Assembly: GCA_047495785.1 (NCBI GenBank)
Contig: JBLDXI010000045.1
Coordinates: 186,001 to 250,000 of the forward strand
Length of the DNA stretch: 64,000 nt
From: Lepidodermella squamata
Taxonomy: Eukaryota; Animalia; Gastrotricha
Direction: 5' to 3'
The first letter of the stretch is position 1; the number at the start of each line of letters is the position of its first letter. The translations under genes and the position numbers were made by a program. Positions 5,101 through 39,757 of the stretch are shown here, in pieces. Under the pieces are notes generated by a model. That model searched no databases. It saw only the letters and a program-made list of their open reading frames with translations, and had not been told where the DNA came from.

Positions 5101-7336
5101 TTAACGAGGCGAACGCCGTCGGCGCGTTGGCGGCTGGGAGGTTTTTCGACAACGCCCCGACTACCTTGTCTTGAAGCGCGGAGAAGCCGCTGTTCTCGAC
5201 AGATCTCGACGCCAAATCAACGAAATGAAACTGGCCACGACCGCCAGATACTAGAAAATAATACAAAAATTGCATGAAAAAATGCTTTACAAAATAACAA
5301 AAATTACGAAGTCATATATTCAATTAAAAATTGAAATTTAAAAAATCCTGATAAATACCATAAAATTCTGCGAAATTTTAAAAATTCCAAAAATTCAAAT
5401 ATTCGAAAAATATTTTTTTTATATTAATTTTCACTTCTAGCGGAACTAGTCTTACTTTTAGCAGAACCAATTTCGCCTGTTAGTGGAATCAATTTTGAAA
5501 TTTTGGAAAAGGCCTAAAACCCATTTTCCAAGCTTTTAATTCATAAATATTCGAAAAGCGACCTTTTTCTTGTCTAAAATTAAGGTTCCGCAACATGTTG
5601 ATTTGGTTCCGCTACAGTCAAATTTGGTTCTGCCAAAAGATATTCTGATTTTCAAATGGTGCCAAGTTTTGTCTGATTTCGCCTTAAATTTTGTTTTAAA
5701 TGTGGCGAATCTTGCCATGAAATCCTGTGTTATGGGATGCAAGGTCCCAACCTTGGCTATCAGCTTGAATATTTCCATAAAAACCATAGAGAGAAAAATG
5801 ACCAGAGTAAGCACTCAAGCTAAAATATTGATCTCCATTATTATAGAAGTGCGTCCTCAAAACGGATATCTCCGTTTTCTACCAAATTTTGCATGCCTAT
5901 AGAACGCGAGCTGCTCTTTCACGTGGTATAAGATTTGAGGTGGGCAATTGCTGCTCAGTCTTGATCTCATCAAAATAAGTAAAACCATTGTGAAAACGAG
6001 GTTTTTGTATCGTAACAACGGTTGGGTTGCCCACCTCAAATCTTATACCACGTGAAAGAGCAGCTCGCGTTCTATAGGCATGCAAAATTTGGTAGAAAAC
6101 GGAGATATCCGTTTTGAGAAAGTCAACGTTGAATTAAAATGAGGATTTAGAAATTTTAGCTTGAGTGCTGTCTCTGGTCATTTTTTCTCTATGATAAAAA
6201 CATATAAATTTTGAAATTATTCTTAATAAAATCCTAAAATTGATCGAAATATTTTTTCAAATTTTGAACACCTGATTTTTCATAAATTCGTCGCATAAAA
6301 GCTCAAAAATCGCATATTTTATCATTTAATAATTTTCATGATTTCAAGGCATATTTTTTCGAAAATTTACTTGTTTCACTGCCGTTAGGTTGGCGCTCGA
6401 TTTGGTACTGGTACACGTTGAGGGTTAGAACGAAGATTCCAGGCTGTTGGGGATGCAACGAAGCCGCCTTAATAGCCTGGTCGACGTAAGCCAACGCCTG
6501 CTTAGCGGACGAGGCGCGGAGTTCGCGCGGGCCCGAAAGCCGCCCGACGCCTAGCAGTTTCGGAATATCACCACTGCTTCCATCTATAAGGCGGGCGTAA
6601 TAAAAGATATCAGGTAATACAGGCGAGATAATGAAATATTGCATGTACTCACCTTGAGCAATGTGTTTCCAACAAATCGGCCGTTGTTATTTCGCCAGTC
6701 GATGCGTTGATGAACATGCGCGAGGCGGAAATTCGAACCGAAAAGCGAACCGACGATCGCGTAACGCGAAAGGTGTCGATGAGATCGAACAGCCACGCGA
6801 GCGAAGTGGCGAGCAGCGGCTTATCACACGCCCCCGCCGCCTTGTTATACAGCGCCTGATCGGCAACTATAGATACAAAATAGGTGCGATTTTATTGTTC
6901 TATCGCCGCCACTCGACCGTAACGAGCCGCGGGTAAATCAATACTACTTACCTTCAGAATCGCAGCTCGAAACAGCCAGGCATGTTGAAGCGCCCTCCAT
7001 CGCTGCATTGATAAGTAACGGCAAGCACTCAGAGGCCATGGTTCGCTGAAAATAGACGGGGAAAAAAATAATTAAAAATCTCCCTTAAAAAATTTGACTT
7101 ACATTCGAAGTTTCGGGTGGGAAAATTGTTTCGACGGGTAAGTCTTTCCACTCGGCCGTATTTTTAACGAAGCCCTTCCACCATTTCGGCTTCTGGTCCG
7201 ATTTCGCCGGGCGTTGCTGGTCGACGCGGATGCAGACGCGGTTGTTTTGCGGGTCGCAAACCACGCCGCCATCGTCCGGCGACGACGGCGTTGCCGCGAG
7301 TTTAACGAACAATTTCGACGTTTGATGGCCAGTCAT
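2147..7336 (-). CDS. KIF26: KIF26 / vab-8-like kinesin-11 family protein (multi-exon)
   Basis: Spliced exons give LAWLFDLID..RFSVRISA..DLL, ELRASSAKQALAYVDQAI, LTLNVYQY, SGGRGQFHFVDL (KIF26 motor signature) and tandem EIWIDGP/DWIDGP motifs. Downstream exons 2687-2561 and 2365-2147 join in phase through GT-AG sites. Confidence 0.85.
2821..3315. mobile_element. MITE with about 95-bp TIRs, internal telomere-like tract and possible 9-bp TSD (Mutator/foldback-like)
   Basis: 2823-2920 is the near reverse complement of 3216-3311. The TIRs contain TTTCATACAT-N4-ATGTATGAAA palindromes. AATTTAAAA flanks both sides (2812-2820, 3316-3324). Lies in KIF26 intron 2688-3461. Confidence 0.8.
3088..3192 (+). 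repeat. Degenerate (CCCTAA)n tract inside the MITE
   Basis: ctaaccctaaaccttaaccgtgaaccctaacc... read directly from the sequence. Confidence 0.85.
5440..5640. repeat. Imperfect inverted repeat / MITE relic
   Basis: cttttagcagaaccaattt..ctgttagtggaatcaa (about 5455-5495) versus the reverse complement of about 5600-5640; built from gcggaaccaaat-like subunits. Confidence 0.6.
5786..6193. mobile_element. Foldback element: perfect 92-bp inner inverted repeat within older imperfect outer arms
   Basis: 5856-5947 is the exact reverse complement of 6027-6118 (79-nt spacer). Outer arms about 5786-5830 and 6153-6193 are imperfect. Located in a KIF26 intron. Confidence 0.85.
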
Positions 7337-10300
7337 CGTTTAACCTTGACAAATGAACCAGTTCGTTTCACGAGTCAAGTGTGAAGCAATTAAACAAGCT
7401 CAGGTAGTAGCACTGTGCACGAGCGAGAATTATTACATATTTTTACGATGGCGATTAAAAAAGCCTAAAAATGCTGGACATAAAAAAAAGAGAGAAAATA
7501 TTAATTTACAATAACAATATTAAATCTAAATATATAACAGTCGAGTCATAAAAATTGTGCGCAAAGGAGCGAAAAAAACAATCTTTTAAAAAGTCAAATA
7601 TATGAGCATATAAAACACGCCGCTAGCTATGGACAATGGCTATCGGCGAGTAATAAAATAACGCGGCGAAAAACACCTGCGCTATGAAAGAGAGTTGTGA
7701 GTAAAATGATGAGAGGATCGAGGTGTCACTACTACGCAAGACCAGATCCGCGGTGTAAAATTTACGACCGCCGTAAATGCAAATAAATACTACACACCTG
7801 TTTTTGAATGTGTATAGCAACGAAAATCGTTCATAAATCGCGGTTCCGCCACGGCGGGTAATAAATGTATATTTTTCGTCCGTTGACGCGCGCGCGCGCG
7901 TTGCGACGTGCGCGTGTCGGGAATTTCTGCACGCTCAATAGCTCACGCGGCTCGCGCGCATCTTAGATATTAGATAGACTACTACCAGGTACATTGTAAC
8001 ACAAGATTACGGTGGTAAGCGATACTTACACTATGTTCCTTTATCTGCTGGGAAAGTTGAGCGACGGTTGTAAATTTTCCGCCGCGCAGGTACTACATGG
8101 CGAGAAATTGTTTCCGCTGTTGCTACTGAATGGGACGATAGGCATATATAGCCTAGTTACAACACGTCTCGTCGAAATTGAGACGGAAACGGGGACCGTT
8201 ACATGCCGAGTTATTACCACAATAACAACACGTTCTTATTTTTCAACGACGACATAATCAAAATCTATCTTTTCAACAGAATCCCACCAAAAGTCACCTG
8301 TAATTAATTATAATTATAATAATAAAGGTAAATACTACAACTAGTAGTAGTGTTTGAGGCTCTATAAGCCGTGGCGCGCGCGCATCTACATGGATATATT
8401 TGCCAACTTATTTTAGCCGTTGAACGTCAATCGCGGCGCGTCGTGAGAAAATGCGACAAACACATCTCGTGAGAGTCGGTGAGTGACTACTGCTACCACA
8501 GAAAAAATCGTGAAAAGTCAGAGTAGCTGGCGATTTAAATAATAATATAATAATAATTATAAGCCGCAGTTCAATAAGACGAGTATTCAATTCGAATAAC
8601 GAGACAACAATCAACAAAACGTGGCGCGGCTTGTTGTTTGCGCATCCTTGGCGTCGTCGCCCGGCGCAAGTCAACAGCGAATTTTCAAGACGCGGATTAG
8701 AGACCGCGCCCGGCGTCAACGAACGAGCACAGGAAAAACCGCGACTTTAAACCGGTGGAATACTTATTAAAATAAATAAGACGCGTTTGGGCGGGGTGGG
8801 TGGGTAAGCGATCGTTTTATGATGGTGATAAAGTAACCAACAAGCTACGATGGATAAACTTTGATCGGTAAACAATAATAATAATTATATCGGTCATGCC
8901 GTTGCCTGGATGCGGCGACCTATGCGCGAAAAATAATACAGCAGCCGGCTGCTGTAGCGGAAAAATACCAGGCTATTAATGTCCATGTCTGAAAATAGTG
9001 AATAAAGAAATATCGCTTCTTTATATACTAACAGAGAGAGAGCGCGGAAGCTACTTTCTCACCCGCATCATCTTTTATATAATCGAACAAAAAGCAACAA
9101 CAAACGTAAGAACAACATCAACAAGCACGCGATCTGTATGTGTGTGGGAAAGAATTAAAATTGCAACAACAATAAAACCGAACGATCGGCGGCACGAGAC
9201 TCGGATATATCTGTATCGCGCGCGCTATCAAAGAAGTATATTACAGACTACTTAGCGCGCAAAAATACCGCACGCGTTGTGCCGACAAAGGTTGCCGAAC
9301 TGGCACGAGGCCATAATAAATAGGTAAAAATGTAATAAAAGAAGCGAGCGGTTTAACGCCCGCGCTCGCTTCTTATACAATGAATCGAGGCGCCAATGAT
9401 ACGAAGCAAATGTGGCAACACAAAACTGACATCATAGCCGGAAAAATAACTAAATAAAAATAGAACGCAGCGCCAGTCCAGCGCAACGAAACGGTAAACA
9501 AGAAAACAAACGCAAAAATCGAATCGAAGGTTGAGCTGATAATAATAAAGTAACCGATTGATACGCGCCACCTTAAAAATATTAACTATTTTTCGAGGCC
9601 AATGATGTTTACATTCAATCAATGCCGTTAGTTTCGTTCGATGATGTTAGTGTAACAAATATAATAACAACAAATCGAACACGATGATAACAACAAAGTG
9701 AACACAGCAGTTGCATAAGCGATCTATCAAAGCTAATTGCCGGATTGTAGCTAGTCGAGGGCAAACAAACAGGAGGCGTTCATCATTTAGCGCGCGTGCG
9801 CGTGGCAGTTTGTAGCCACGAGCAAGAACCAAGCCGGGATGATGACTGTTCATCCGGTGTAGTCTCCAGCCACCACCGTGTTATCGCTCGCAACGGACTA
9901 ATTTGGATCAGTTTTATTATTGCGTTCGTTCGCTCGTCTATTGGTCGCGGAGCCGTTGCTAAGGGCTCGCCGTATAATTGTCGCACGGTTGTTAATTTGT
10001 CGCCCGAATTGCAAATTAACACCGATAAGAAACGCACCCGCGCAACCGGGAGACCGGGAACAATTTGCGCAATCCGTAAACAGAAAGTAACACCCTTAAA
10101 GCGGACATTCGAAAGAACCTCGTAAGCATATATTTCGGATTACAGGATTCTAAAATTGGCGTGAAAACGAAATAAATCGGAAAATTCTAGAAGGGCGAAA
10201 TGAGATTCACAATTCAAAAATTTATTCTAGTTTTTCGAGTTTTAAAACGAGTTTGAAACTTCTCCGAAAATTCTAAAAGTACCAAATTTGATCTTTATGA

Positions 10301-18192: not shown

Positions 18193-19809
18193 ATGGTTTC
18201 GAGCGTGGCTGGCATGCTCCATGCCTATACAACCCTGAGATCGGTCTCCCATTTTCTGCAGAAAGTCGATGAGACACCCAACGTCAAGCGCGAGGCTCTG
18301 CTTGAAGGACTGATCAACCTGACAAAAATATCACGATGGCATAGCGTCGAGGAATTTTCGACTGCCTGGCTCGCTGCTGGGGTTTACCGCGATGTTCCAG
18401 ATCATGGTTGTGAGGCGCATTATCGTATCGGGCCGCTGAGCGATCTCAAGCTTCAAGCTGTTACTCGATGGATGTCTTGTAATGAGTCTACGATCAGCGG
18501 TTCTGCTAATGAGGCGAGAACCGAGAACTATCCGAACGTTTGTTATTCGATTAATCCGTAATCTGAAGGCATGTCCGGCCAATGTGTCGCTGTGGATAAA
18601 AAACCGCGAAAAATTACCACCCTAAGTTATTTGCGCATCAATTGGGTCGTAGGTGTGTGGTGTGCGACACAAAGGAATATCTGCGAAAAGGAGAATATCT
18701 GGACCGCCCGATCAAAAAAGAAGAGAATTTTGAGTGAAATGAAATGGAAAATTTATGGCCAGTTCCTAAAAAAAATATGAGCGAACGGATATGATTGTAG
18801 TCAACATGCAATAGCAGTTTTTTCTAATTTGAAATTTGAAATTACTTGATTGAGATTTTACCGGTTCAGTCTACTCTTATCGGTGGTGTGCAACACACCC
18901 AAGGGAAGCTCGGGCAGTACCGCGTCCAGAATTTTGTGAACGCCAAGGCAGATCTAATCGAGCGTGTTTCCATCCCAAGATCGTTTTTCTCTAACGGTTC
19001 CAAATGTACTCAACTTCTGCTAGGCGCGACTCGCCCCTTACGCCCACATTTGGTCCACTGTATTGACGAATTTCGGCAACATGGTAGCAGGGCGGTCGTG
19101 AGCTAGTTGTCGGTAAGGGCAACCATTGATCGGTTCCGAGATCTCAGGAAGATTCCCAACACCTGCGACGCCAAGCTTCGGAATGCCGGGGCTCACCACA
19201 CTCTTCCGTCTTCAGCACACTTCGTTCGGCTTTGAAATAAAGCATGCGACAAGCGTGCAGCGTGAAGGGCATGAAAACTGCACCCTGTCGAGCGTGTGCA
19301 GCATGCTCGCACCATCTATCAACTTCGGATGTCCAAAAATTGGTTCATTCTTTGGTTTGCAATTCACCAGTTGCTGAAAGCTGCAAGTTCCTCAATCCTC
19401 AATCCTCAACTGTAAGTTGTGTTTCTCCTCTATGCACATTCAGTGCGTGCAGGTTTCAGCAAGCTCCAAGCTCTTTCTCTCTTCTGAACTCAGTTTTGCC
19501 TCAAGCATCAAGCCAGTAATAGGCGTGAGTCATGAGCCTAAGATACGTCGCAATTATGGCGATGAAAACGCAAACCAAGTCGAAGGCCATCTGACAAACA
19601 AATCGGACGTGGTGCCGGTCAGCGAACCCGACTTAACTCTCACTCCGGTCATCCAGCTTGCCCCAAGTTCCTCGCTGGAGATGGCGAAGCCGGCCTTCTT
19701 CGGCAACCCGGCCCGCAAAGTCGACCTACTTTGGACAATCACGGCCACACACGATCCTTCAAAGACGAAGCCCGGTGAAGAAGAAGCAGCTGGCAAAAAG
19801 GTAGCATGA
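18193..19809 (+). other. Locus X: SETDB1-N-terminal-like segment plus PxVxL-like module; exon structure unresolved, possibly a decaying paralogue
   Basis: ORF 18193-18561 has LRSVSHFLQKVDETPNVKREALLEGLI..TAWLA..DVPD, versus SETDB1 [39 protein letters not shown] 19417-19809 has EPDLTLTPVIQLAPSSSLEMA, versus gene Z DPKLKLVPVVRLEKISAEAIA. Intervening frames contain stops. Confidence 0.45.
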
Positions 19810-20162
19810 GATTTTAGCATAGTGATGCATGAGCGTACAGTTGACTATCAACGTTTGGGATGGCTTTTCCACCATGGTAGACAGAAAAGAGAAGCGGGCG
19901 TGCACCATCAAGCTGTTGCTGAACGAATGGTTGCTACAGCGGCTTGAAAACGTCCCGATCGAGCCTGAAATGACTACGGACTTTGTCACCCTGAAAACTG
20001 TCCCAACTGAAGTCAGCAGCCTTTTTGTCTCAATCTATATTTTTTATTTTTATTTTTTGAAATAAAGCTGATCGCAGTCTCCTGCGATAATAAAACAATT
20101 TTTAATCATATTTAATATAAATTAGAAAAATTAATACCAAGGTCGAATAATTTTAAATAACT

Positions 20163-20172
20163 TTTTGGCGCG
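20163..20172 (+). promoter_or_regulatory. Candidate E2F site upstream of SETDB1
   Basis: TTTTGGCGCG matches TTTSSCGC, at the edge of an AT-rich tract about 480 bp before the SETDB1 ATG. Motif match only. Confidence 0.25.
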
Positions 20173-20651
20173 CTTCTTTATGCGGGATTGTCAGTTTTTT
20201 GCGGCTCTTATCGCAACGCATCGAACCTCCCAGCCCGAAGTGGGGGTTGCGGATTGCGAACGGCATGAGAGTGGAGAAGGGGGGTTAAAGAATTTGCTGG
20301 GAAAGAATCTTGCCCCGAGAAAAAATAATTGGGCAGTGAACCCGATTTGAAGCATTTCTAGGCTATTTCTGGCAAATAAATCCTTGAAAATCATGGCGTT
20401 AGCTGCAGCTCGAATGGTTGCTGTGTGATTTTTCTGCAACATCAGCTTTTTTTTAGTAGCGTCTTCCAATTTCGTTGGTAGAAGTGCTCTCTCAGAGGGC
20501 TCACTCTCAGATAGAAACGGCTTTAAGTGTTTCACTCCACATATCCATTAGTTGGCTGCCCCGGCTTCTCCCCTGGCTGTGTTACCCTAGTGCCGTCCTT
20601 GCCCTTGATTCAGTGATTATGGATATAACGGAATACTATTGTAAAATCTAG

Positions 20652-23600
20652 ATGACTGTTCGTAATTCAGACTCATTTGTTACGCTGGCCCAAGAAGACT
20701 TGGAGCAATTCCTGCAGGATGTTGATTGCTTGGATCTTGTTCGAAGGCTTCGAGAAGATGGTCTCTCTACCTGCATTTCTATTCCATCCGGTGAAACTTT
20801 TACCACGATATGTGAAAAGATGCGGCAAGTTGCGTTCAGTGCGGCCGTGCGTGATCGGATTATGAAGCATTTGACGGAGAAGGTTGAAGCTGTGATTATG
20901 ACGAATCGCATGTCTCTAGCTCTCGCGTGGCTTGGCGTTCTCATCGACGAGGCTCGCACAACGGAGAATCTCCAACGGTTTGTTGATGAGCGACGGCCTA
21001 AATTTCAAGGAATATTTTGTTTCTATATTAGAAAGGCTCTATTGGACGATTTCTTGAAGCAATACTTTGAGCACGCTGACAAGCTAAAAGACGAAACGAG
21101 AGTAATTTACAGCAATAATTGCAAATGGTCTAGCTTTAATCCGCCCGTTTATTTAGGATGACAGCGAAACAGCAGTGCTAGCCACGGCTCTGAAGATGTC
21201 AGCAGATGATGTCCCAAACGCAACAGCTGCTTTATCTTTTTTTCCTCAAATTCGTGACCTTTATCGTGACTGCCCTGATAAAGATCCATCGATCCAAGCC
21301 GATTACAATGTCGATGAATCTGTGTGGATTCAACAGTTGTTAACGTGTGGCAAGAATAATGGTGTTGATTTATATCCTTGGGCTGATGCTATGGAGATGT
21401 CGGCTGCTCAGATAAAGCAACTGATACTTCAGAAGCAAGTTGCTCTCATGAAGGAGTAAGTTATTACAGTGTTGCGAGAGTTGCTTGATGGACTAATTTT
21501 TAATTCTAGATGTAAAGTAAGCGTGGATCCGCCGAGGGCACCCAGCACGGAATTACCATCAGTCCCCGCCTCGTTTTACAGCACTAACCACTTGATGCCA
21601 GGCGTCAAACAGCCTACTGATCTACCAGTCGCCCAAGTTTTCAAAGGTGACCAAGTCTACTTGCCCGATCAACGTGGAGCTAACCACCCTTGGAAATTGT
21701 GGACGGTGATGCAGGTGAACAGAAATAAATTGTCATTGTTCGACCCGAACAAACCAGCGATGAAAATGGATTCGACGATAGAAGCCGTCGCGTCCTTCAA
21801 AAATGCGGCTGAAGAGGGAATTTGGTTTCCCGTTGGAACCCTTGTAGTTGGTTCGTTCGCTGCATATTAATGAATGACCCTGAACGAAATCATGTTTTGT
21901 TATGTTGATAGCATGGTGTGATAATGGCCAGAATACTACACCATTCGGTTTTGCTGACAATTATTATCAAGGAATAGTGTTGGAAAGTCCATGCGCATGG
22001 AACCGTTTCCGATACTTGGTGTATTTCGAAAAAGGCGAGCCACCAGCCTACGTTCGGCCTGACTTCGTTTGTCGTAGATTGAAGCAATGTTTGTTGTTTC
22101 TGCATTTTATGGTCATTTTTCTTATTTTGCTTTATTTAGTTGAAAATAACGTCGACCAGCTTACCGAGCTGTACGATCCAAAAGGCGAATTGCAAGAATT
22201 TTTCCAGCTTTTACCTCGCCGTCCATTTATCATGGCGGATGTTGGCCAAGCCTTGTCTTGTAGTTGCTTCAGCGGAATGTGCACAGTTACCGTCGAAGAA
22301 ATCGACTGCAGTCTTTTCAGGATTCAATACCAGCATCCGAAAGTTCTGCCTCCCGAATGGATATTTCGAGCTAGCAAACGATTCGAATTGATGGCTCATT
22401 TCTTAGTTAGTTCAAGTCAATTTTTGTGAAAACTAATGTAACTGTATGCGAAATATAGGTAACTGATCGGCAAGAAAACGGCAGTTTAGCCGAACCATCT
22501 CGTCGCCCACACCGTTTCAACTCATCAGCCACTGTTGAAGTCGCTAACTGGGAAGATATCGGCCCTGTTGTTGGCCCAGCCGAAGACAAGAAATTGTTGT
22601 CGAACGACGACACTTTTTCTCGAACTCGAGATATTAACAAGAAGCATAAACCGGTCGCAAGGAAGTCGACTATATCCGGCCTTGTCAACCACGGCAGGCG
22701 TAGAAAGCGAGCGAAATCACCCCCAGCAGTTCGATCGGCTGAAGAATTACAGGGTGTCTTGGTTAACGAAGAAGTCTCCAGTCGACGTGGTGGACGCCCG
22801 GAAGCTAGAGCTGCCTTGTAAAATTTTTTGGCGATTTGTTACCTACCATGACTATTTTTTTGTATTTTGTCAGTGTTCAGCATATTTGCTCGGATAAATG
22901 CGTTGCCGATGAAGCAAGTTTCTTCGCGAATCCTGATCCTTTGCGAAACCGGAATCCGTTGACTATCCCGTTTTTATGCGGGTGGACGCGTCTTCCATCT
23001 CCGAGCTCTAACCAATCGATCGTTTATTACGCGCCATGTGGAAGAGCTTTGAAAAACGCGGCCGAAGTCGACTGGGCTCTTGTCAATGAATATAAAAGCC
23101 GGTTGACTATTGACATGTTCTCTTTCGAGAGGGATGTGGACATTATCAAGCGATTTGAAACGACTGCGGTATTTATTGTTTTATTTTGAATTGTTCAGGC
23201 TCATTTGATTTATTTCTATTTTAGCCGAAGAAACTGGTCAGCGATATGAGTAATGGCGAGGAGAAGCACCAACCACTGCTTATGGTTAACAAGTTTTCTG
23301 AAGAAGTTCTCGACGGATTCCAGTACTCAAATAAGTGTGATTTATCGAATAACATCCCTCCTGATGCGTTTGAGACCGATTTTCTGGTCGGTTGCGACTG
23401 CACGGACGGGTGCCGCGATCCAACCAAATGTTTTTGCCGCCGCTTGACTGCAACATCTGCCGCCAAGCCGGACGGAAATGTTGGTTACGACTTCAAACGG
23501 CTGTTGAAATCCGTTCCCACTGGGTAAAATTTGCCTGCGAAATGTTCAATTTCGATTCTAATTAACTATTTTTTTTTAGAATTTATGAATGCAATTCCAA

Positions 23601-24387
23601 GTGTAAATGCGCTTGCAATCCGTCGAATTGTTTGAACCGCGTCGTTCAAAATGGCATGCGTGTTCGCCTGCAGGTGTTCAAAACAGCCGACAAGGGCTGG
23701 GGCGTGCAAGCCATTGATGACTTGCCGCGTGGCCAGTTCTTATGCACCTATTCAGGCGAGATTTTAACGAGCGACGAGGCTGATAAAGTTGGCCGGCAAA
23801 ATGGCGATGAATACTTGTACGATCTCGACTTCATCGACACTGCTATTCGTGTCAAACAATTTGGAGACATTGATGATGACGCATCAGAGGCATCAGAGTA
23901 TGGGCACTGAATTTGTTCTTATAATTTGGTTATATCGATTTTTTTACTTTAGGGATAGTGGCAATGGTATGGAAGTTGAACATAATGGCACAAATGGCCA
24001 GCCTGCTGCACATCGCGAGGCGTATAGTGCCTCCCTTGTTCGATTATATCACGGTTCGGCTGAAAATTATGCCTATGTAATGGACGCGAAACGTCGCGGA
24101 AATTTGTCGCGATTTTTCAACCACTCCTGTGATCCAAATTTGACGGTTCAAAGCGTTTTTGTCAATACACATGACATGCGCCTGCCTGTTATTGCTTTCT
24201 TCACTTCTCGCCGCATCCGTGCTGGCGAGGAACTTACCTGGGATTACAGCTACGAGCCTGGCAGGTGAATTTTCGGCGGAAAAACTCGTTTTAATTTTTA
24301 GCTAAATTTCTTTGATATTTCAGCGTTCCCGGCCGAATTATTCTCTGCAAATGCGGCTCTTCAATTTGCCGTGGTCGTCTGCTGTAA
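20652..24387 (+). CDS. SETDB1: Histone H3K9 methyltransferase SETDB1/eggless (Tudor, MBD, pre-SET, split SET, post-SET), multi-exon
   Basis: Tudor [29 protein letters not shown]; [25 protein letters not shown]; pre-[13 protein letters not shown]; [52 protein letters not shown]; last exon 24324-24387 [13 protein letters not shown]. Confidence 0.95.
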
Positions 24388-24560
24388 AAAATGACTATCT
24401 AGTGGAACTTTGATCAAATCACTTGCTCAGCACCAATGTGCGTAGTTGTTTTTCCGGTCTCCAAAATTATTGCTCCGGTTTTTAATAAGTTGCATAGTTT
24501 TTAATAGGTATTTTCCTTTTTTTGGGTAGAACTTATAATTTATTGAGATGGAAGAATAAA

Positions 24561-25828
24561 ATGGACGAGGAGGACAACATGCTGCTGTCGCGGTCCTGCG
24601 TTGGACTGTCGAAACTCAGCTGGCTGATGTACGAGTTGTCCAAAACCCATAACCCAAGCAGGTATGTTATTGATGCCATAATAATTTAACCGGGTATGCT
24701 ACCAAAAATTACCAAACCAGTTACCCTCGGGGTTTTCTCCAGTGAATTTTTTTCGGTAAATTCGTGGCTGAAGGATAGAATATTCTCCCGATAGGCTTAA
24801 TTATTGAAAAATAGTTCAATTCGTACAATAAGTTGAAAAAATTGAAGAGTTGTTGCTTAACTTATGGGTCACACTTGATATTCTGTAGGACTTTTGACTG
24901 ATAGTTGAAAAAAATGATTTCGTAGAATTTGAAATTTCGAATTCATTTTTCGAATTTGAAATTGGCTTCCACTGAAAGATATCTTGTGTTATATTTGATT
25001 ATTGGATAATTACTTAAAAAGTTGAGTTCAACGTGCCACTAAAGAAGCCACTTAATGGACACATTTACGTGGCTGCATATTATATTATTAAGCGTCCTTT
25101 CATTCATTAAAAGTTGCGGCTTTATTAATACTTGCCGGACTTCATTTTCACGCATTATTGAGAATTTAAGCTTGAGGTTTTAAAGCAGCTTCTAAATGCC
25201 ATTTTTTTCCTCGTGATTTTGTAGGAAAGCAAATCTGGAAAAATTTATCGCGGAATTTCGGCGAAGTGTCGATGCTACGCGGCGATTTCATCAATTTTCA
25301 GCTGAAGACCGCGATTTGTGCGCGCGAATCGGCATATCGCTGCACAATTTGCCTGATCTATTCGTCAGTTTGTACTGGTTCGACGAGCTAAAACGGCTGT
25401 ACGACGAACGCGACCCAAGCGTTTGTATTTTATATTCCCACGATAACAACGTATCGGCAACGGTCGTATCGCCTGGCTTCGAGTCGCCGGGCGATGAACG
25501 CGAGGAGAACCAGCTGTGGCGGCAATCGCCGTGGCGGATGAGAATAGTCGAGAGCGTCCAAATCGGGACGAGAGCTTTTGAATCAGTCGAGATGGGGCAT
25601 GCGTCAACTCGACGCTCTTACCAACAATCGAGGTCTTTCAAACCGGAAGGTGACAAGGAAAAACAGCGGCCGAGTGGCTCGCAAATATGGAAAAGAGACG
25701 ATAAATTGAGCCGGTTAGCGGCTGTAGTCAAGCTTGAACGACTTTCGCATCGAGAGATCGCGCTGCTAAGCGGCCGATCAAGTTCGGAAGATAGCGGCTC
25801 GTCTGCCAAAAGGTCGAGAATCAGTTGA
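24561..25828 (+). CDS. Gene Y: about 234-aa protein with SETDB1-N-terminal-like segment, AVVKLERL module and basic tail
   Basis: Exon 1 24561-24661, intron GT(24662)..AG(25224), exon 2 in frame with ORF 25316-25828. By manual count 21 of 83 positions are identical, ungapped, to the SETDB1 N-terminal region. Confidence 0.8.
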
Positions 25829-26317
25829 GTCGTATATGACTAGTTTTCAGTTTTATCTAATCGATGGATCTAATCATGTTGTGCTGAATGACAATCTTCG
25901 ATTTGCCATATAATTATGAATTTTTCTTTGGTGCAGAACGTGCAAAATTAGACAACGCTTAATAATTCTCTACGTATTTTCAAGGAGAGCTCGGATTTTT
26001 CCTAGAATTCTTTACATTTATGGCCGATTTTTAGCAATACCAGACATTTTACGTATAAATGATGAAATTAATTCTTTTGAAGTTTTGCAAGTTCTGCAGC
26101 CATTATGACATATTGCTATACATCTGTTTTGGTTTTTTCTTTCATTTCGCGTAATATTCTGTCTTTTTGATCATGTCTCGAGAATTATTGTGTATTCTTA
26201 TTATTTGAAAGCTTACTATCGAGCTGGTTTGTTGGAAAATCATGGTTATAACTGAATATAAATATGAGATGTTTTCTCAATATTTTATCTAGGTTTTCTT
26301 TGTTTTGATTAATCTCC

Positions 26318-26840
26318 ATGGAGTCGTTTTCCGATCTTGTAGTACCTGCGAGTGAGGTGCTCATTGCTGGTGCTGTCGCAGCTGTTGCGGCCGTGGGATT
26401 TTTGAAGCGGAATTCATGGGCGGCGAGGAAGGTGGAGGCTATGGAAGCGCCTATTGTTGAAAGCAGCGATGAAAGCGACTCGGCCAATGAAGATCCAAAG
26501 CTCAAATTAGTACCGTAAGTTGAGTTTCACCTCTGATTTTGGTCCTCAAGTTGCGTAGAAATGATCCTTTTTCATTGGCTTTTTTTGATTGTTTTCGAGC
26601 AGCTCCTTTCCACTTTTTTCAATATTTCTGTTCCAGCGAAAACAGTATGAAAAATGAATGGAAGAAAGGAGCAGAAAAATTGAATTAAATTACTTGAAAA
26701 ATGAAAATGTTTTCTTTCCTGTTGTTTCTAGTGTTGTTCGACTTGAAAAAATCTCTGCTGAAGCCATCGCAGCGATGAAACTCAAGGATGAAGATGAGCC
26801 AAAATTGAAACGCCGACAGCTACTTCGCCGGAAAAACTGA
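26318..26840 (+). CDS. Gene Z: about 101-aa protein with hydrophobic N-terminal segment, PxVxL (PVVRL) motif and basic NLS-like tail
   Basis: Exons 26318-26514 and 26732-26840 join by GTAAGT..TTCTAG in phase 2, giving VLIAGAVAAVAAVGFL...KLVPVVRLEKIS...PKLKRRQLLRRKN. Confidence 0.7.
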
Positions 26841-27150
26841 AATGGAAAAAATCCTAACTTGAAAGGTTTACGAATATGCAATAAGAGAAATGTTACCTTC
26901 TTTCATGCGTTTTTGTCTCTTACTGTTGCATCGTCTTGAATCTCGATTTCGAATGGTTCTGCGTTTTTAATGAGCCATATAATTAACTATAGCATTTTTA
27001 TACTTTTGGTTCATGGATCGTGTTTTTGTTTCCTAAATTTGCTGCCTTATCTTGCTCGTATGTTAGTATTGCTCAGACTTTTGATAAATACGCACCAATT
27101 TGATGAAAGGACATAAATTTTTATGTTTTAGTAATTTTTATATTAAAAAA

Positions 27151-28167
27151 ATGTCAGACCTAATCAATGCCACTCCTACGAGTATTATCTACTCATCGGC
27201 AACAGTTGCAGCAATCGCCGCGCTGTATTATGCCTATCATCGATATCGCGGCGGGAACATCTGCCCACCCGATCGTTTAGACGGCCGCGTTGTCGTCCTA
27301 ACCGGCGCGACTTCCGGCATTGGCAAAGCCGCGGCTGAAGAACTGGTCAAACGAGGCGCAGTTGTCGTGCTAGCCTGCCGAAACCTCGCTGCGGCTAATA
27401 AGTTGGCCCTTGACATTACAAGCGAGGCTCTCAAGAAAAACCAGCCGGGCCGCGCGACAGCTATGCTGCTAGATTTATCATCAATGGACTCGGTTCACAA
27501 ATTTGTCGAAATTTTGAAGCAGGATTTTTCGAAAATCGATGTACTAATTAACAACGCTGCTGTCTGGGGCACATCGGAACGAGTAATGACAAAAGACGGG
27601 CATGAAGAGCATTTACAGGTCAATCACCTAGCTCCGTTAGCTCTAACTATTCTAGCCCTACCTTTGATGAAAAAATCCGAGGATGCCCGTATAGTTTTCG
27701 TTTCTTCAGATTTGTATAAACGAGGTCGGTTAGATTTCGACAATCTCGATTCGGAAAAATCTTACGAGCCGATGCAGACTTACTCAAACGCGAAATTGAT
27801 GCAAGTAATGTGTGCGCAAGAATTATCGAGACGCCTTAAAGCCAGCTCGAGTTACTCAAATGTCAGCGTTTTCACAGTCAGACCCGGCGTCGTGAATACT
27901 GGGCTATTTCGAAATGCATTCCGCAACCCTGTTGCTAAATTTTTCGGCAGCATTGCTACGTTTTTAATCCTGAAAACGCCTCACCAAGGCGCTCAGCCAA
28001 TTCTCTACTGCACAGCTGTGAAGAAACTGCGCGGTGAAACTGGAAAATTCTACGGAAATTGCCTGGAAGAACCGTTGAAGACTGAAATTTCGCGCGACGC
28101 TACAGCGGCGAAGAAAATCTGGGACGTCAGTATGAAACGAGTCGGTCTATCGGACCACCAGATTTAA
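27151..28167 (+). CDS. Short-chain dehydrogenase/reductase, retinol dehydrogenase 11-14-like, intronless
   Basis: N-terminal TM anchor, TGATSGIG, LACR, LINNAA, VNHL, catalytic YSNAK. Confidence 0.92.
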   Translation: MSDLINATPTSIIYSSATVAAIAALYYAYHRYRGGNICPPDRLDGRVVVLTGATSGIGKAAAEELVKRGAVVVLACRNLAAANKLALDITSEALKKNQPGRATAMLLDLSSMDSVHKFVEILKQDFSKIDVLINNAAVWGTSERVMTKDGHEEHLQVNHLAPLALTILALPLMKKSEDARIVFVSSDLYKRGRLDFDNLDSEKSYEPMQTYSNAKLMQVMCAQELSRRLKASSSYSNVSVFTVRPGVVNTGLFRNAFRNPVAKFFGSIATFLILKTPHQGAQPILYCTAVKKLRGETGKFYGNCLEEPLKTEISRDATAAKKIWDVSMKRVGLSDHQI

Positions 28168-28277
28168 AACATCGAAAACTAATCTAATTGATTTGATTAC
28201 GTGATAAAACTTTAATTTTGTTCGAATTTCTGTTATTTTTTTAGTTATTTTTCAACCAAATTTTGAAAATTGTGTTA

Positions 28278-31200
28278 ATGACCGTGACGAGTGCCGGCTC
28301 GCTGCTAGCCGAAGCGTCAGCCTGCCGATGGTCCCAGTTGGTTTTCGCGAAGCGTTGGAACGAACTTCGGCAATCGCGGGAGACGTCAGATAGCGAACTT
28401 CTCAACGCGTTCTGGTCTGCAGTTGTGTTGAAGCAACCAACTCACGCCTCGACATCACCCTCCTCGGCTTTCGAAGCCGATCTTTCGTTTCTCGACGCGT
28501 TGGACCTAGAAGTCGATAAAGAACTAGTCGCGTCTTTCGTATGTTTCCTCATCGCCTCGGCTCAATTATCACCCGAGGCTGTTTGGAAGTTTGTATCTGA
28601 CCGGGGTTGTTTGATGCGGCAAGAACACGGCAAGTTGCAGATCGAAACAATTGGTGATATGCTGAAATCTCTAGTCATTTCTTTACTTGCGTTATCGAAC
28701 GATGCGAAATCGATCCATGCGCCGTCGAACGTCGTGCAAAAGGGCGACTATTCTTTGATAGCTAAATTTAAACTTCTCCTAGTCATAAAAGCTGAGATGA
28801 TTACATCGATTTGCGACTTTATGGCAACGCATTTGGATTTCAATAACCAACTGACGTGTTTCAGGCTGTCCAGGTGGCTTGATATTATATCTATTTTCGA
28901 GCGGAGTGGCCCGTTGAAGGCTTATTGCCAGTTTGCTACACCGAAATCGAATAGCATTATCGACAGTTGGAAACGGCTGCAACAACTTTCTCTTTCAATG
29001 GCTGCGTTGGAACGATCGGCAATTGCAATTAAGGTAATACATCTATTATTTCGCATTGAAATTGTAGAATTCAACAGCCAAAAACCGTCAACACTTAGAT
29101 GCAAATTAGCGTATTAATAAAATACAGACGACAAATTTCGTTATTTAAAATATTGAATGAAATGGTTAACTTAGGAAGTACTTGGCAATAATTATCATTG
29201 GCCAATTAGCTAATCCAACTGGCCGCTGGGTAGTATAGCCGACTGAGTGGTGCAAAATTTTCCTGAGTATTTTGCGATTTAGAGGCTGATAGGACTGTCA
29301 TACAGAACTGAGTATTGGTCAAAATGAAGGATCCACGACTCATGGGTAGCATTGAATGGCCACGGGCATCTGAATTTTACATTTCTTTGCCCAGCAATGT
29401 CTTTGATTTGTTTACATCGGAAGAAAATGTTGATGATTTGTGGAGCAAAATGACCCGCGGCCTAAAAGATGAAGATGACCGTTTAACAAGTGAAAAGTGG
29501 GATTTGGCGACATTTTGGACATCGTGAGATTTTGATGCCACTTTCAAGATCAATTAACGAGGAGTCAAACGATATAAACTAGAGGTTGATAGTCATCAGG
29601 GTTGCAGAGAAAATGGGCTTCAAAGTTTTCGAGCGAAAAAATCCTAATTTTGAAAAATGCGCGCTTAAAAATTGACTTATTTTATTGCATCAGTAAGTAT
29701 CCCCACTGCAATTAATTCTGGTGTTATTTTCTAATGCACAGACATTATTTTGGGCAATCTGAGGTGAGGAATCTCGGTAGATTTTCAAAAATTTTGCTGG
29801 GATCAAGCTAGTGTCTCAACGACAACCTGAATCAATAACACTTCTCAAGGCAACTGAAATTTGAAATTTAAAAATCATCAAGAAAAACTGTGTAAAAACA
29901 TCTTGGAATCTTGGAAAGCGTCCTTCTTCAAGTGAACACACTTTTAGCGATTTGCTGGAAAATACAGAAAATGCGCCAAACCCCACTTTTCACTTGTTAG
30001 CGGTCATATGTGCGAATTCGCTGATATTTCATATTTCATACGAATATTAAAAAAATATATATATGCATTTTTTATTAGGAAAATCTGATAATGATGTCGA
30101 ATCGATGGATTTCTCGAAGTCGCATGTCGCCGTTTTCCTTCAACCCGAGTCCATCGAAAAGCGCCTCAACCCCTATTTACCCGAACGGCGAACTTGTTTC
30201 CGCAAACGAACCCGATTTCTGTTCGCTATTCTGCGGCGCTGTCGACTATTTGTACGCCCTTGAATTCGGCTCAAATATCAACCGGTTCTCATCGTCTGAA
30301 TTTATGATACCCCTACTGAGATCGCTTTCTCTATCGATGACCCTATTCGTGCCGTCGTCGAATATCGAAAGCGCGATAACTCAAGCGCTAACCTCGCGAT
30401 ACGTGCCACTTTTGAATCACGTGGCAAGCGCAATGAATATTCCCAACTCAAGCCTGTTCGACCTCATCGACCACGCAGCGAAAAACTCGATAAATCAACC
30501 TCAAATGACCGCAAGTCAAATGATACCGAAATTCGGCTCGAGCAATTTCATCGACAATCGGCCGAGTTATCTCATGCGAATTTTCCAGTCCTGCCGATTG
30601 AGTTGCCTAGCAAAAAGCCTGAATGTTACATCGCACACCGGGCAATTTGTCGCTGAGCTGATAACAAACGCCGGGCGAGATATGTCGAAGGTTGAATTTG
30701 AGGAGTATGTAAATCGAGATTTGTTGAAAAACCTTCACATCGCGCCGTTTTTAAATCGGACTGAAATAATTCGACTTCAGCTTGTTTTAGGAGAGCGAGC
30801 TTCGAAGGAAGAAAATCATCTAGCGCTCGGCCTTCTAGCCGCTGTTGATTTATTCAAGTGTTTTCTGTTGACTGGTCCAGGTATCGGCGACCGGCCAGGC
30901 GAGGTGTTGAAATCTGAAGGCGCGGTTGGGTCTTTCCTGGAAAATATCATTAATAAACGAATTAAAAATTTTGCGAATTTGATCCTGAATACCGACGATG
31001 ACGATGGGTGTGATCACCATCAGGACGATAACGACGGAAATCTGCCGGATTTAGACACTTTCATGTCGACCCTACCAGATTCACTGGCTGAATCTGTTGG
31101 AATAGGCCAGGAGACAGCATCTCGTCTGTTATTTCTACTCGGAAAAACTGATCAAACCAGGCAAACTGGGGTTGTTAGGCGATTGGTGTTAGCGAACCCG

Positions 31201-33207: not shown

Positions 33208-34254
33208 TGATTATCACACAGTAATTATTGTTATTATTGTCGCAGTCAGAAAACACGTCTTTTTGTATTTGACCGATCACAGTAAAAAAAACGAAATAAA
33301 GTTGGCATAATTCTCACTCAAAAATTTTCAGAAGCAGCGTGTTGAACTTGCCGTATTAAATAGAGCAGAAATGAGTGGAGTAAAGGGCCGAAAATTTGGA
33401 CGCTTTGAGCTTTGGCCCTGATTATCAATTTGTGCATATCTGATAAAAATGTCACTGAAAAATAGCTCACTTCATGGGCTTTCAAGTGGTACCAAATTTG
33501 TCAATACTCTCATATACTATCGATTTGTGAAAAATCGCCGAAGCTCGATCACTCAGAAAGGTGTTTGGGACCCTCCTTGCCAAACGCTCACCGGTTGGGG
33601 CTGAACTTTTTTGTGCACACAGGGATTTACCTAAACTAAATTCCGTGAAAAAATCTCGGCAGATGTATCGGCACTTGATACAGGTGACTTCGAATTAAGC
33701 ATCTAAATTTGGACACCTCTAATGAGATTTTTAACTATATGTATGTGCAAATGAAATGTATGCTCTTTGTCAGTTTTTGAACAGAATGGCAACGCATTTA
33801 TGGAACCTAGGAATTAGCTTAATGACTCCTGACCTAGGCTCTGCTTTCATGATTCTGGCTGGAGAGCATAGAGATTGATAATGAATCCGAATCCGAATCT
33901 TTCATTAGAAAAAAGTACAAAACAGTATTATGTCCAACACATGTCTTGATGGCGCAAAAACAGTGCATTACCGGTAAAAATGGCCGGCGCCATTCGATCC
34001 GCCGTGTTAGACTCGGTGAAAATTTCGAAAATAAAGCTGTTTTTATTCGATTTATCTCAAAATTAAAACGCTTGGAGATGGTACTTTTGGCCGCACCGAC
34101 GACTAAATTATACACCGAAAAATCATTTGTGCTTTGTGCTTTTGAAAACGGAAAGGATGCAATAAAAAATGCTGGGTACTTACATCCTATATTTTAATAT
34201 TTTAAGAGAATGTCCGTTTTCGTGTTTTGCACTAAAACTGTGAGCTTGATGAAG

Positions 34255-34600
34255 GCAAGTGGTCATGATGATGCGAAATTTTTACCACATTTGAAGCAAA
34301 CAAAGTTGTAGCGCACTGCCCGAAAATAATTTCAGTGTCAAATAAATGATAAGGTTGCGATATTTCAATTATGGGACTAATTTTTCTGAACGTTGTTTCT
34401 AATCAAGTCCGTCATCTATAGTCGCTGGGTCGAGCATTTGAAATTTAATAAATGACATGGCGTTTAATTCAGGCATTACGGTATCTTGAAAATAAAATTA
34501 TTTATTTGGCTGCTTATGTTTAGTGTCGTTGGTTGAGTAATATTTTTAAGGCAATTATGGAATATCTCGAGTGCGGCCAAGGCTATAAATACATTTTTAC
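34255..34600 (+). promoter_or_regulatory. Conserved upstream block and TATA box of knottin gene 1 (A-type)
   Basis: ggcaagtggtcatgatgatgcg ... gtcgagcatttgaa ... ggctataaata (34581). Homologous blocks at about 36587, 37831 and 39043. Confidence 0.7.
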
Positions 34601-34652
34601 CTCTGAGTGTAGCTGTATTCACAAACATTCGTAAGCATCATAACTTGCTAAA

Positions 34653-34906
34653 ATGTCTATTGGAGCATCGAAGGTTATCATGGCGGCCGTTCTTCTGGCT
34701 TGCATTTTGATCGCTTTCATGACAGAGCCCACGTCAGCCGCGTGCCGAGTATATGGCGCGGTATGCACGCGTGGTGGTTGCTGCGACGGCGTGTAAGTTT
34801 TTTTCAACTCGACTGAATGGTCTATGATTTTTCCCATTTTTTTAGACAATGTGTGTGTGCTGGCGGTTTTGGGGGTCTCTGCACTTGCGGAACCTCGCCC
34901 ATGTAG
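34653..34906 (+). CDS. Knottin 1: secreted 8-Cys agatoxin-like (ICK) peptide, 2 exons
   Basis: Exons 34653-34792 and 34846-34906: MSIGASKVIMAAVLLACILIAFMTEPTSA-ACRVYGAVCTRGGCCDGVQCVCAGGFGGLCTCGTSPM*. Confidence 0.88.
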
Positions 34907-35599
34907 GGTAGCTGGCAATGTCTGACTGAAAAACAACTGAATTCACGAAAGTCGAACGCCAAATATTTATTCAATCACCGGAAAGGGGAGACGTCTTATA
35001 CTTGATTGCATGATAGGCACATTTTTGCCGTCGATCATTAATTGCTTCTGCCGTAACTTAAAGCCCGCAAACTCGAACGCTAGTAATAAAATTGTGCCCG
35101 AATGAAATAAAACCGAATGTCATGTCAGTGATGACATTTACCCGAAAGCTCTCGCCCGAATGGAAATTCACGAAAGTCAAACACTTGAACAAACGAAACA
35201 AAATTAATGTCAAACACACGAATGTTTCTTTATCTAAGGTTATCAGCGAAACTGCTCAGAAATGAATTAAGTTGAGAAGACGCGCTCCATTTTCTTCTCG
35301 CTCTGCTGCCGCGACTGCGTTGGTTCTCGCGCATCGTTCAAAAGAGTCTGGACAGGCGTTCCCGAGCTGTCTCGAGCAGAATGAACGGTTTCGGCAACAA
35401 CGAAATTTTCTCAGTTTTGAAAAGAATTGAAAATTGTCTTATATTGAGCATTCAGAGTATTGCAGCACGCCCAATTTTCAAGAGCATTATATTCAACACC
35501 TAAAAGAATTTACCTGAAGTAGCGTGTTGACTTCGGAACGGGGCAAAAATGAGTGGAAATCAAATACGATAATATTGATAAATCGATTAGATACTATAC

Positions 35600-35895
35600 T
35601 ATATTTGTCTGATATAGCACGAGTAAAGAGTGTATATCTGAACGGAGCCGGCCGAGATTTACGAATCCGAACGAGTCGCAGACGAGTGGAGATGAGCAAA
35701 TCGAGTACGGCGAGTTCAGATATGAAAATCAGTAAAAAATCGTCCAAACTTGCTCCAAGTATCGAAATGTGGACCATGATGCGGGCTACCTGGACCATCA
35801 AGAAGCTGCTTCAATTTCAACTTTGTTAATCGTTTTAATTACGTTCATTTGATGAGCGATATAGATTTCATTGCCTTGACTCGTGAAAAGTCAGG
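35600..35895. repeat. Degenerate inverted repeat (old MITE-like relic) between knottin genes
   Basis: ctgatatagcacgagtaaag..tatatc..tgaacg versus the reverse complement of about 35840-35895 (ctgacttttcacgagtcaag..tatatc..tgaacg). Confidence 0.4.
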
Positions 35896-37037
35896 AATCG
35901 ATGCCGATGATGACGATGAATACGACAAAATAGACAGTCAATGGGTGCTCGGCTACACTGGGGTAAGACGAAGCTTTATAGGCTGCGATTCCTGGTGATG
36001 CCTATGTAGCAATCAGATACTGATGGCACAGTACCTAATTATACCTAAAAATAATAAGGAAAGTAAAGTAACGAAAATTGTCTTTTTTATTTTTTCAATG
36101 TTGTTTACGAAACGTAACGCATTTATTCCAACATAAACAACATTTATTTTGCCAAAGTCAAATTCTAAGTTCACACTAAGACATGACATCGGCTCTTATC
36201 TCCATGAAATCGTACATATTATCGGTTTTTGCCCGGGTCTTGATCCATCGATTGAGAATTGTTATGGCATAAAATACGTATTTCGAAGTTTTCGAGGCTT
36301 CGAGACAGGGTTGTGATCGAAAGAAAAGTGCAAACTTTGTGTCTTGAAAACATTTGAATGGGTGATCCTCTGGCGGGCCAATTTTTACAGCACAGGTAGC
36401 TCCTAGGTATGGCTAACTCCAGGTAAAATTTGGCTCTTATCGGGTCGTTTATTGTTGCGTAACAAACATTGCAAATTTACACTGTTCCTTCGATCATACC
36501 CCTGAATAACGGCCATAAGTTACTCACAGTCCACACCACGGTTTGTTGGAAGTTCCCTTACGTTTTGAAAATGTTGGCAATAATGACGGCAAGTGGTCAT
36601 GTTGACGCGCAATTTACGATGGCTCATACATATAATGGGAATAAAATTGGAGTAAATACAGTCGATACCCTACTGCTCGAAAATAACGTCAGCCACAAAT
36701 AAATGTCAGGGTAGGTTATTTCTATTTTGGGACCCTGTTTTTTGAAAGTTTCTCTTGAAGCCCGTTTTTATGGTCGTTGAGTCGAGCATTTGAAATGTAG
36801 TAATAAATGACAAGGCTTTTAATCCGGGTATTGCGGTATATTGTTAAAACTTTTCATTTACTTGGCTGCTTTTGTTTTTGTTTTGCTTTTGTGGCGCAGG
36901 TGAAGTATTATTTTCGAGGTCAAAGCTATTCATTCAACCAATGTCCCCTGAGTGCGACCAGGGCTATAAATACTTGTTTCACCACTGAGCGTAGCTTCAT
37001 TCACAAAACATTCGTAAGCTTAACAACTTGCTATAAA

Positions 37038-37292
37038 ATGTCTCTTGGAGCATCGAAGGTTGTCATGGCGGCCATTCTGTTGGCTTGCATTTTGATCGCT
37101 TTCATGGCAGAGCCCGCATCAGCCAACGTGTGTCAAAAACTGTTCTGGCATTGCGGGAGTGGCTATCCTCCCTGCTGCGGCGCCATGTAAGTTTTTCTAA
37201 CCTCGACTGTCTCACCTATAAAATGGTCATTTTTTATTAGGGAGTGTCGGTGTATAGGTGACTTGTGTACGTGCGAATTGCAACGAGGCTGA
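37038..37292 (+). CDS. Knottin 2: secreted 8-Cys agatoxin-like peptide with C-terminal Gly
   Basis: Exons 37038-37186 and 37241-37292: MSLGASKVVMAAILLACILIAFMAEPASA-NVCQKLFWHCGSGYPPCCGAMECRCIGDLCTCELQRG*. TATA at about 36962. Confidence 0.9.
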
Positions 37293-37729
37293 CGGAACTT
37301 GGGGAAAACTAGTTTCGGCCCATCTTCCAGAAGACAGGCCGAGACCTGCCAACTCACGACAACATGCTAACGGCAAATCAATTGATCTTAGCCAAATTGC
37401 TTTGTCGTGCTGTAGTTATTCAAAGTTACTATTCATTAGTTATTAGTTACTTCTTCTACAATTCCTCAATTCTTCAATTTGTTGATCAGTAAAATTGAGC
37501 GAAAATTCCGGGTATAATTTTGAGAACACGTTATTGCGTTGAAAATTGTAAAGCAACTGAACTCTACCAACAACGTACTTAATGCTACTGTGATCTGAGG
37601 CCAACCGGCCGCTAAAAAAAGCTTGGACCGAGTTTGCGCACCACTGATCTAAGCGAACGAGCGTTCCCCTTAACAACTTGAAAAAACGCGTGTTTCCATC
37701 TAGGGGAAGCGCGTTCGCCTACGAAAAAT

Positions 37730-38210
37730 TCCCCCTATATTTTTACTTTTTAATTTGCTACAAAATCACCGTTGTTATTGCACGCGGAAAAGAGAACAAG
37801 CATTAAACACCGGAGCGTTGAGTTAATGACAGCAAGTGGCCATGATGATGCGCGATTTATGGATGAAGTGTTAGATAAAATTACTACTCTTGAAACAAAC
37901 AACGTTAATACCGCACCGCTTGAACATAGTTTCAGCCTCAAGTAAATGACAAGGTATTAATATTTCGATTACAGGACTCTCATTTCTGAGCGTTTGTTAT
38001 TAAGCCGGTTACCTTTGCTCTCCGGATCGAGCATTATAGAAAAAAATAAAGGACATAGCTTTTAATTCGGTCAGTACGGTATATTGTTGAAAATTTCATT
38101 CATTTGGCTGCTTTTGTTTTTCTCGTAGCGGTCAAGCAGTATTTTTTCAAGGTCATAGCTGTCCATTGAAACAACGTCCTTGGAGTGCGGCTTTTGGCCT
38201 ATAAATACTA
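37730..38210 (+). pseudogene. Orphan A-type knottin promoter copy with the coding region missing
   Basis: Colinear similarity to 34180-34590 up to and including ctataaata (about 38199), with no signal-peptide exon following. Confidence 0.7.
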
Positions 38211-39489: not shown

Positions 39490-39757
39490 ATGTCTCTTGG
39501 AGCATCGAAGGTTATCATGGCGGCCGTTCTTTTAGCTTGCATCTTGTTCGCTTTCATGGCAGAGCCCGCATCAGCCCAAGCGTGTTCAAAACTGTTTGGG
39601 CGTTGCGGGAAAGGCTATCCTCCATGCTGTGGCAGCAGCATGTAAGTTTTTTTCATCTCACCTGTCTCTTCTGTAATTTGCACCCGTCTTTATCAGGGAA
39701 TGTATGTGTGCTGAAACTGCCGATGATTGCTCTTGCAACTTGAGCTACATAAACTAG
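39490..39757 (+). CDS. Knottin 3: secreted 8-Cys agatoxin-like peptide with N-terminal Gln
   Basis: Exons 39490-39641 and 39697-39757: MSLGASKVIMAAVLLACILFAFMAEPASA-QACSKLFGRCGKGYPPCCGSSMECMCAETADDCSCNLSYIN*. TATA at about 39417. Confidence 0.9.

Follow-up and report, generated by a model that had tools for sequence, protein, structure and literature searches.

In the genome of the gastrotrich Lepidodermella squamata, a stretch of 64,000 nucleotides (nt) on contig JBLDXI010000045.1 (positions 186,001 to 250,000; hereafter the window) holds a SETDB1 gene followed by a gene, Y, that is a real, conserved and lineage-restricted partial paralog of SETDB1. Y is non-catalytic and carries an HP1-type motif in its tail, and a small neighbour, Z, shares this motif. 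This system is smaller than the four-locus cluster proposed in an earlier note on this DNA, which had distributed an N-terminal SETDB1 segment (module N) and an HP1-box-like motif (module C) over SETDB1, Y, Z and an upstream locus, X. The reading that we favour, with a probability of about 0.4, is that Y, as an adaptor or modulator, would connect the SETDB1 complex with HP1. The features of the cluster are as follows, with lengths in amino acids (aa) where proteins are concerned.

20652 to 24387, + strand: SETDB1 ortholog, 12 exons, 1041 aa, open frame, introns of 51-61 nt.
20652 to 21534, + strand: SETDB1 aa 1-240, N-terminal region kept between both species studied, with no detectable match in other SETDB1 N-termini.
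20895 to 21324, + strand: module N in SETDB1, aa 82-188, split by introns 20978-21031 (phase 2, common to Y) and 21102-21156.
24561 to 24661 and 25225 to 25828, + strand: the two exons of gene Y, 234 aa, with RNA contigs spanning 24548 to 26210.
24579 to 25453, + strand: module N in Y, aa 7-110, from sequence comparison.
25454 to 25579, + strand: conserved extension peculiar to Y, covering aa 111-152 and distinct from a Tudor remnant.
25715 to 25762, + strand: module C of gene Y, whose core, AVVKL, occupies 25721-25735 and is followed by ERLS..EI.
26318 to 26514 and 26732 to 26840, + strand: the two exons of gene Z, 101 aa, encoding an acidic stretch and then PVVRL, formed across the splice.

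Significant homology, together with a common intron position and phase, establishes Y as a true partial paralog of SETDB1. Residues 82-188 of SETDB1 aligned with Y almost without gaps over 107 residues, rather than the approximately 30 that the earlier note had claimed for module N; the score was 99, as compared with 32 ± 4.6 (maximum 51) for shuffled sequences. A phase-2 intron interrupts the same Arg codon in the two genes, and RNA contigs show the splicing of each. Similarly, all four cross-species SETDB1/Y pairs were significant in module N. Tudor, MBD and SET parts are absent from Y. Its extension of ~40 aa is conserved across both species and has no counterpart in SETDB1; the possibility that this extension is a Tudor remnant was tested and rejected, as was a further module-N copy at 19829-20065. 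No DNA-level similarity is left between the loci, and Y is therefore neither a recent duplicate nor an amplification chimera.

Transcription of Y and Z, which the earlier note had named as a check, was confirmed by the presence of their splices in RNA contigs. Coverage gaps at 24442-24547 (between SETDB1 and Y) and 26211-26327 (between Y and Z) fit a distinct mature message for each of the three genes, with the qualification that contigs cannot fix transcript ends exactly. An in-frame SETDB1-Y fusion splice was rejected based on the same gap and on the lack of such a joint in the RNA contigs, which show presence and not absence. The 563-nt intron of Y contains a repeated element (window 24700-24800), where the DNA-run depth reached 607 in one bin and many loose ends were seen.

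The earlier note had also raised the possibility of a decoy. Y might be a dominant-negative, microprotein-like protein that soaks up the N-terminal partner of SETDB1 and lowers H3K9 methylation instead of forming a bridge to HP1. Its layout, consisting of an interaction domain only, would suit this role, as would its expression alongside SETDB1 in one RNA sample and its position 173 nt behind that gene (94 nt in the second species). A pure decoy needs neither a conserved tail motif nor a conserved extension, and we consider this explanation quite unlikely.

The comparison with a second species rests on a downstream gene encoding an RDH14-like enzyme, which has a 66%-identical relative on metagenome contigs of the European Nucleotide Archive (ENA). 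These contigs keep the gene order SETDB1-Y-Z-RDH-next gene.

27151 to 28167, + strand: RDH14-like short-chain dehydrogenase, an unrelated neighbour and the synteny anchor.
Contig L003 of the second species, 8717 to 9273 with a second exon from 9339: Y2, the ortholog of Y, 212 aa.
Contig L003, 9551 to 9735 with a second exon from 9794: Z2, the positional ortholog of Z.

Y2 and Y are 40% identical over 177 aa. In module N, identity was 40% between the SETDB1 orthologs and 43% between Y and Y2, as compared with 22-25% for the SETDB1/Y cross pairs. As orthologs are thus closer than paralogs, the sharing of module N between SETDB1 and Y predates the split of the two species. The shared phase-2 intron is missing from both genes in the second species, whose SETDB1 (L003 5400-8622) has 2 introns, as compared with 11 in L. 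squamata. No third species was found in scans of Joint Genome Institute (JGI) metagenomes.

Between strains of the second species, Y2 differs at 19 silent sites and 4 replacement sites, all 4 conservative; based on this ratio, Y is kept by purifying selection. These data also bear on the idea that Y and Z are debris left by duplication and evolve neutrally. Database searches returned no relatives of Y or X, a weak blank given that the real, 40%-identical ortholog of Y was also missed there; the lack of homologs beyond the two species and the rapid divergence of Z are what such debris would predict. Open frames, splicing and expression speak otherwise, as do the 19:4 ratio and the synteny with a species whose RDH is only 66% identical. 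For Y, this explanation is already largely refuted, and for the pair it is hardly credible.

The tail motif links Y to Z. The two proteins share a 22-aa stretch with a gapless score of 40, which exceeds that of every one of ~160,000 control windows (48k from six-frame translation and 114k from real proteins), and module C in both, as claimed in the earlier note, is well founded. The Z motif reads PVVRLEKIS..AI, in which PVVRL is formed by a splice seen in RNA. Where Y has AVVKLERLS..EI, Y2 has PLVKIKRLS..EI; the rest of the Y tail is not conserved. The conserved core has the pattern hydrophobic-x-V-x-hydrophobic, flanked by basic residues, and lies in the last exon of Z. In Y2, Z and Z2, a phase-2 intron falls in the codon for position −2 relative to the central Val; Y has none there. 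Because this intron position recurs, the motif exon would most simply be one ancestral exon common to Y and Z. Y, Y2 and Z fit the 14-position HP1a-binding consensus (PMC12526061); in the set of SETDB1 proteins, matches to it have a background rate of 0.58 per 1000 aa. The same scan found no match to this consensus, and so no module C, within SETDB1.

Z itself is less well conserved. The earlier note had given it a membrane anchor, and its N-terminus does include a hydrophobic stretch (mean hydropathy 2.1). This stretch is missing from Z2, and a conserved transmembrane segment was thus not borne out. In both Z and Z2, an acidic stretch precedes the motif. The N-terminus of Z (26318-26400) is similar to the N-terminal anchor encoded by the downstream RDH gene (27151-27230), a resemblance not found in the second species. 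The corresponding candidate, in which Z joins the RDH anchor to the Y tail as a junction chimera, gave p 7e-4 on 45 aa and 0.08 on the full RDH and was rejected, as Z2 has no anchor.

Several lines of evidence support an adaptor role for Y: its homology to SETDB1 and the common intron, the synteny, the expression, the 19:4 ratio in Y2, a motif that is kept where its flanks drift, the fit of Y, Y2 and Z to the HP1a-binding consensus, and the motif intron common to Y2, Z and Z2. Before the species split, a segment encoding a lineage-specific domain of ~110 aa came to be common to SETDB1 (aa 82-188) and Y. Module N may be a protein-contact surface, through which Y would bind SETDB1 itself or a partner of SETDB1. 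The Y tail motif would dock on an HP1 chromoshadow dimer, so that Y would help to keep the SETDB1 complex in place on HP1-marked chromatin, or would compete for its partner; Z would be a small HP1 ligand consisting of little but the motif. There are precedents: HP1 chromoshadow dimers bind such motifs (PMC12526061), SETDB1 self-associates (PMC12167477), and a SET-less SETDB1 isoform still represses (PMC13108219).

A number of observations weigh against this adaptor role. The core of Y is AxVxL, with Ala at −2, and not PxVxL. Basic residues between −4 and +4 number two in Y, Z and Z2, three in Y2 and none in X, as compared with 3-6 in Drosophila sites. The consensus is that of Drosophila; Z2 (LIVQC) fails it, two further, chance-like matches lie inside the folded domain of Y, and the bare pentamer is present in over half of a proteome, as PMC12526061 warns. 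The similarity of Z to Z2 was not significant (p 0.26), and the two are taken as orthologs from their position, their exon structure and the acidic stretch. Module N had no match in Pfam, PDB, the ESM Atlas (where all matches were under 0.85) or other databases, and fold searches returned nothing significant using AlphaFold models that were poor, built with no deep alignment (predicted local distance difference test (pLDDT) 56 and 43). Finally, given tandem origin and operon-like packing, co-orientation is weak evidence for a common function, as genes of other kinds, among them that for the unrelated RDH14-like enzyme, lie in the run as well.

Some of these observations suit another explanation. 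Y may be a conserved nuclear protein that shares the SETDB1 domain by descent, possibly because SETDB1 captured it from a Y-like gene, and that works in a complex of its own, its tail binding a ligand other than HP1, e.g., SUMO. SUMO-interacting motifs follow the pattern hydrophobic-hydrophobic-x-hydrophobic, and VVKL, LVKI and VVRL fit it. The SETDB1-Y identity of as little as 22-25%, the extension peculiar to Y, the acidic stretch of Z and Z2 ahead of the motif, the failure of Z2 against the HP1 consensus and the unsettled direction of copying with two species are all consistent with this. The basic residues at +1 and +4 are less suited to SUMO motifs. They are better suited to HP1 sites (PMC12526061), and Y2 and Z have Pro at −2. 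We regard a separate complex with a non-HP1 ligand as a real possibility, if one short of probable.

The SETDB1 gene of the cluster was confirmed. Its translation matched Tudor repeats, an MBD, and pre-SET, bifurcated SET and post-SET domains, the set that marks membership of the family, and its top relatives are named SETDB1 or eggless (hemichordate, annelid, oyster, amphioxus, frog and flatworm). Ten of its 11 introns appear as joints in RNA contigs, and among the single-nucleotide polymorphisms listed, strain differences comprise 30 silent changes and 1 replacement. The introns of 51-61 nt, with a GC content of about 43%, are those of a compact animal genome. The protein contains the histone H3K9-like sequence VARKST at aa 559 (window 22654-22671), and 26 of 150 related proteins contain VA[RK]KST; this site may correspond to the automethylation site K490 of human SETDB1. 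Automethylation at K490 lets human SETDB1 bind HP1 (PMC13108219).

The N-terminal 240 aa of SETDB1 had no match in Pfam, PDB, the ESM Atlas or 150 SET-domain relatives. Between the two species, identity in three blocks of this region was 58, 39 and 52%, and that of the pre-SET/SET part was 60%. Based on these comparisons, we favour the view that module N is a lineage-specific piece of the region. The earlier note had tied module N to the binding of ATF7IP. In human SETDB1, a coiled coil within aa 2-115 binds two ATF7IP chains (PMC12167477). A profile of this coiled coil built from 37 orthologs found no match in SETDB1 of either species (−2 and −1 bits), in Y or in X, although about a third of true orthologs escape it as well: of 56 N-termini from orthologs, 19 lay outside the profile, and 5 of the 37 scored under 1 bit once omitted from it. 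To judge from its position, the segment that binds ATF7IP would be mostly upstream of what Y shares; were SETDB1 aa 10-100 a degenerate coiled coil, Y would share only its last 20 residues. The proposed link to ATF7IP is not supported by these comparisons. A bolder proposal is that this lineage swapped the ATF7IP-binding front end of SETDB1 for a new domain, and that Y, a free-standing copy of this domain, co-transcribed with the enzyme and with its HP1-docking motif, is the dedicated SETDB1-to-HP1 bridge, so that a piece of the enzyme would do work like that of KAP1 or ATF7IP; judged from the sequences, this is possible but unlikely.

The genes are closely packed. The gaps in the series SETDB1-Y-Z-RDH-next gene are 173, 489, 310 and 110 nt, and those in the second species are 94, 130, 137 and 50 nt. 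The same-strand run extends over 20652-29117 of the window and over L003 5400-12903. An acceptor-like AG lies 0-33 nt before the start of most genes in the run, with mixed scores and a small null. This layout is operon-like and would make SETDB1, Y and Z co-transcribed. The co-orientation described in the earlier note therefore says little on function.

Upstream of SETDB1, the earlier note had assigned both modules to locus X, which would comprise two open reading frames (ORFs).

18193 to 18561, + strand: first ORF of X, 122 aa, with a weak, unconfirmed likeness to module N and probably not a member of the system.
19417 to 19809, + strand: second ORF of X, with PVIQL at 19645-19659, failing the HP1 consensus and lying 0.9 kilobases (kb) from the first ORF.

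The likeness of the first ORF to module N covers 26-30 residues, with a pairwise p of about 0.1. Against the SETDB1+Y core, this ORF was the top gapless window in 64 kb (about 36k windows), and it has a second, short colinear block, YRDxPD. Once sequences from the second species were added (four-sequence profile), the profile E went from 0.86 to 8.7 and the hhalign P from 0.007 to 0.056; the profile-profile comparison was thus not significant. X matched neither SETDB1 nor Y2 of the second species (p 0.35 and 0.86), and 13.5 kb upstream of SETDB1 in that species had no module-N copy, though synteny breaks there. PVIQL is a PxIxL sequence without a basic flank; it fails the HP1 consensus and has no match to the Y motif. 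We consider homology of the first ORF to module N doubtful, and X is probably not part of the Y/Z system. The surrounding stretch, 18570-20650, is GC-rich (about 51%), has several short ORFs, one of them Cys-rich (19244-19519), and has no match in the second species. A good donor/acceptor pair lies at 19412/19459.

These results also bear on the full proposal of the earlier note, in which X, Y and Z make up a three-member set of adaptors or decoys connecting SETDB1 or ATF7IP with HP1, Z being anchored in a membrane. The top rank of the first X ORF, its YRDxPD block and the hydrophobic stretch of Z accord with it. X loses support with independent sequences, has no upstream counterpart in the second species within the limit given above and carries a motif outside the HP1 consensus; moreover, Z2 is without an anchor, and no ATF7IP-type coiled coil was detected. 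The three-gene set is accordingly very improbable. What stands of the lineage-specific set is Y, a non-catalytic gene sharing SETDB1 sequence and carrying an HP1-type motif, for which expression, synteny, purifying selection, motif conservation and shared introns give independent support, plus at most Z; X is probably out.

Elsewhere in the window, tandem copies with 68-76% DNA identity occupy 34250-39850, inverted-repeat elements lie at 2769-3306 and 5785-6193, and an ORF at 50639-52213 (− strand) contains a Pax1/9-type paired box by eye.

To our knowledge, the means by which SETDB1 is held on HP1-marked chromatin without KAP1 are known in few models only: Windei in flies and LIN-65 in worms. 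If Y is such a bridge, a copy of the front domain of the enzyme itself gave rise to a cofactor, and a domain of 110 aa with a motif of 15 aa makes a small, testable pair. If it is not, Y and Z are still a conserved, lineage-specific gene pair beside an undescribed SETDB1 N-terminal region. Our literature searches found no work on heterochromatin in the gastrotrich phylum and no report of a SETDB1-derived, adaptor-type gene such as this.

The motif of Y and the residues after it, AVVKLERL, resemble those of KAP1/TRIM28, PRVSLERL. Both proteins are non-catalytic, with an HP1-type motif followed by ERL, and KAP1 acts in the SETDB1 pathway (PMC13108219). Unlike KAP1, Y has no RING/B-box/coiled-coil (RBCC) or PHD-bromo part, and neither Y nor Y2 matched any Pfam family; Y is not homologous to KAP1, its relative being SETDB1, to which its functional link is inferred. 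As a non-catalytic candidate partner of the SETDB1 N-terminus, Y also resembles ATF7IP/MCAF1, Windei and LIN-65, yet Y and Y2 are without the C-terminal FNIII domain of ATF7IP and Windei, and Y has no detected match to the ATF7IP-binding coiled coil of SETDB1 (PMC12167477). The SET-less splice isoform of mammalian SETDB1 similarly consists of N-terminal SETDB1 material without the catalytic domain (PMC13108219), whereas Y is a separate gene, lacks Tudor repeats, is 22-25% identical to SETDB1 and has a tail motif of its own. Y, Y2 and Z resemble HP1 chromoshadow ligands (PxVxL/HP1a access code) in that they fit the 14-position consensus within a poorly conserved tail, and are putative ligands; they depart from the known sites in the Ala at −2 of Y and in the two basic residues of Y and Z, and Z2 and X fail altogether. 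By analogy with these systems, Y may do a KAP1- or ATF7IP-like job, yet it is a member of neither family.

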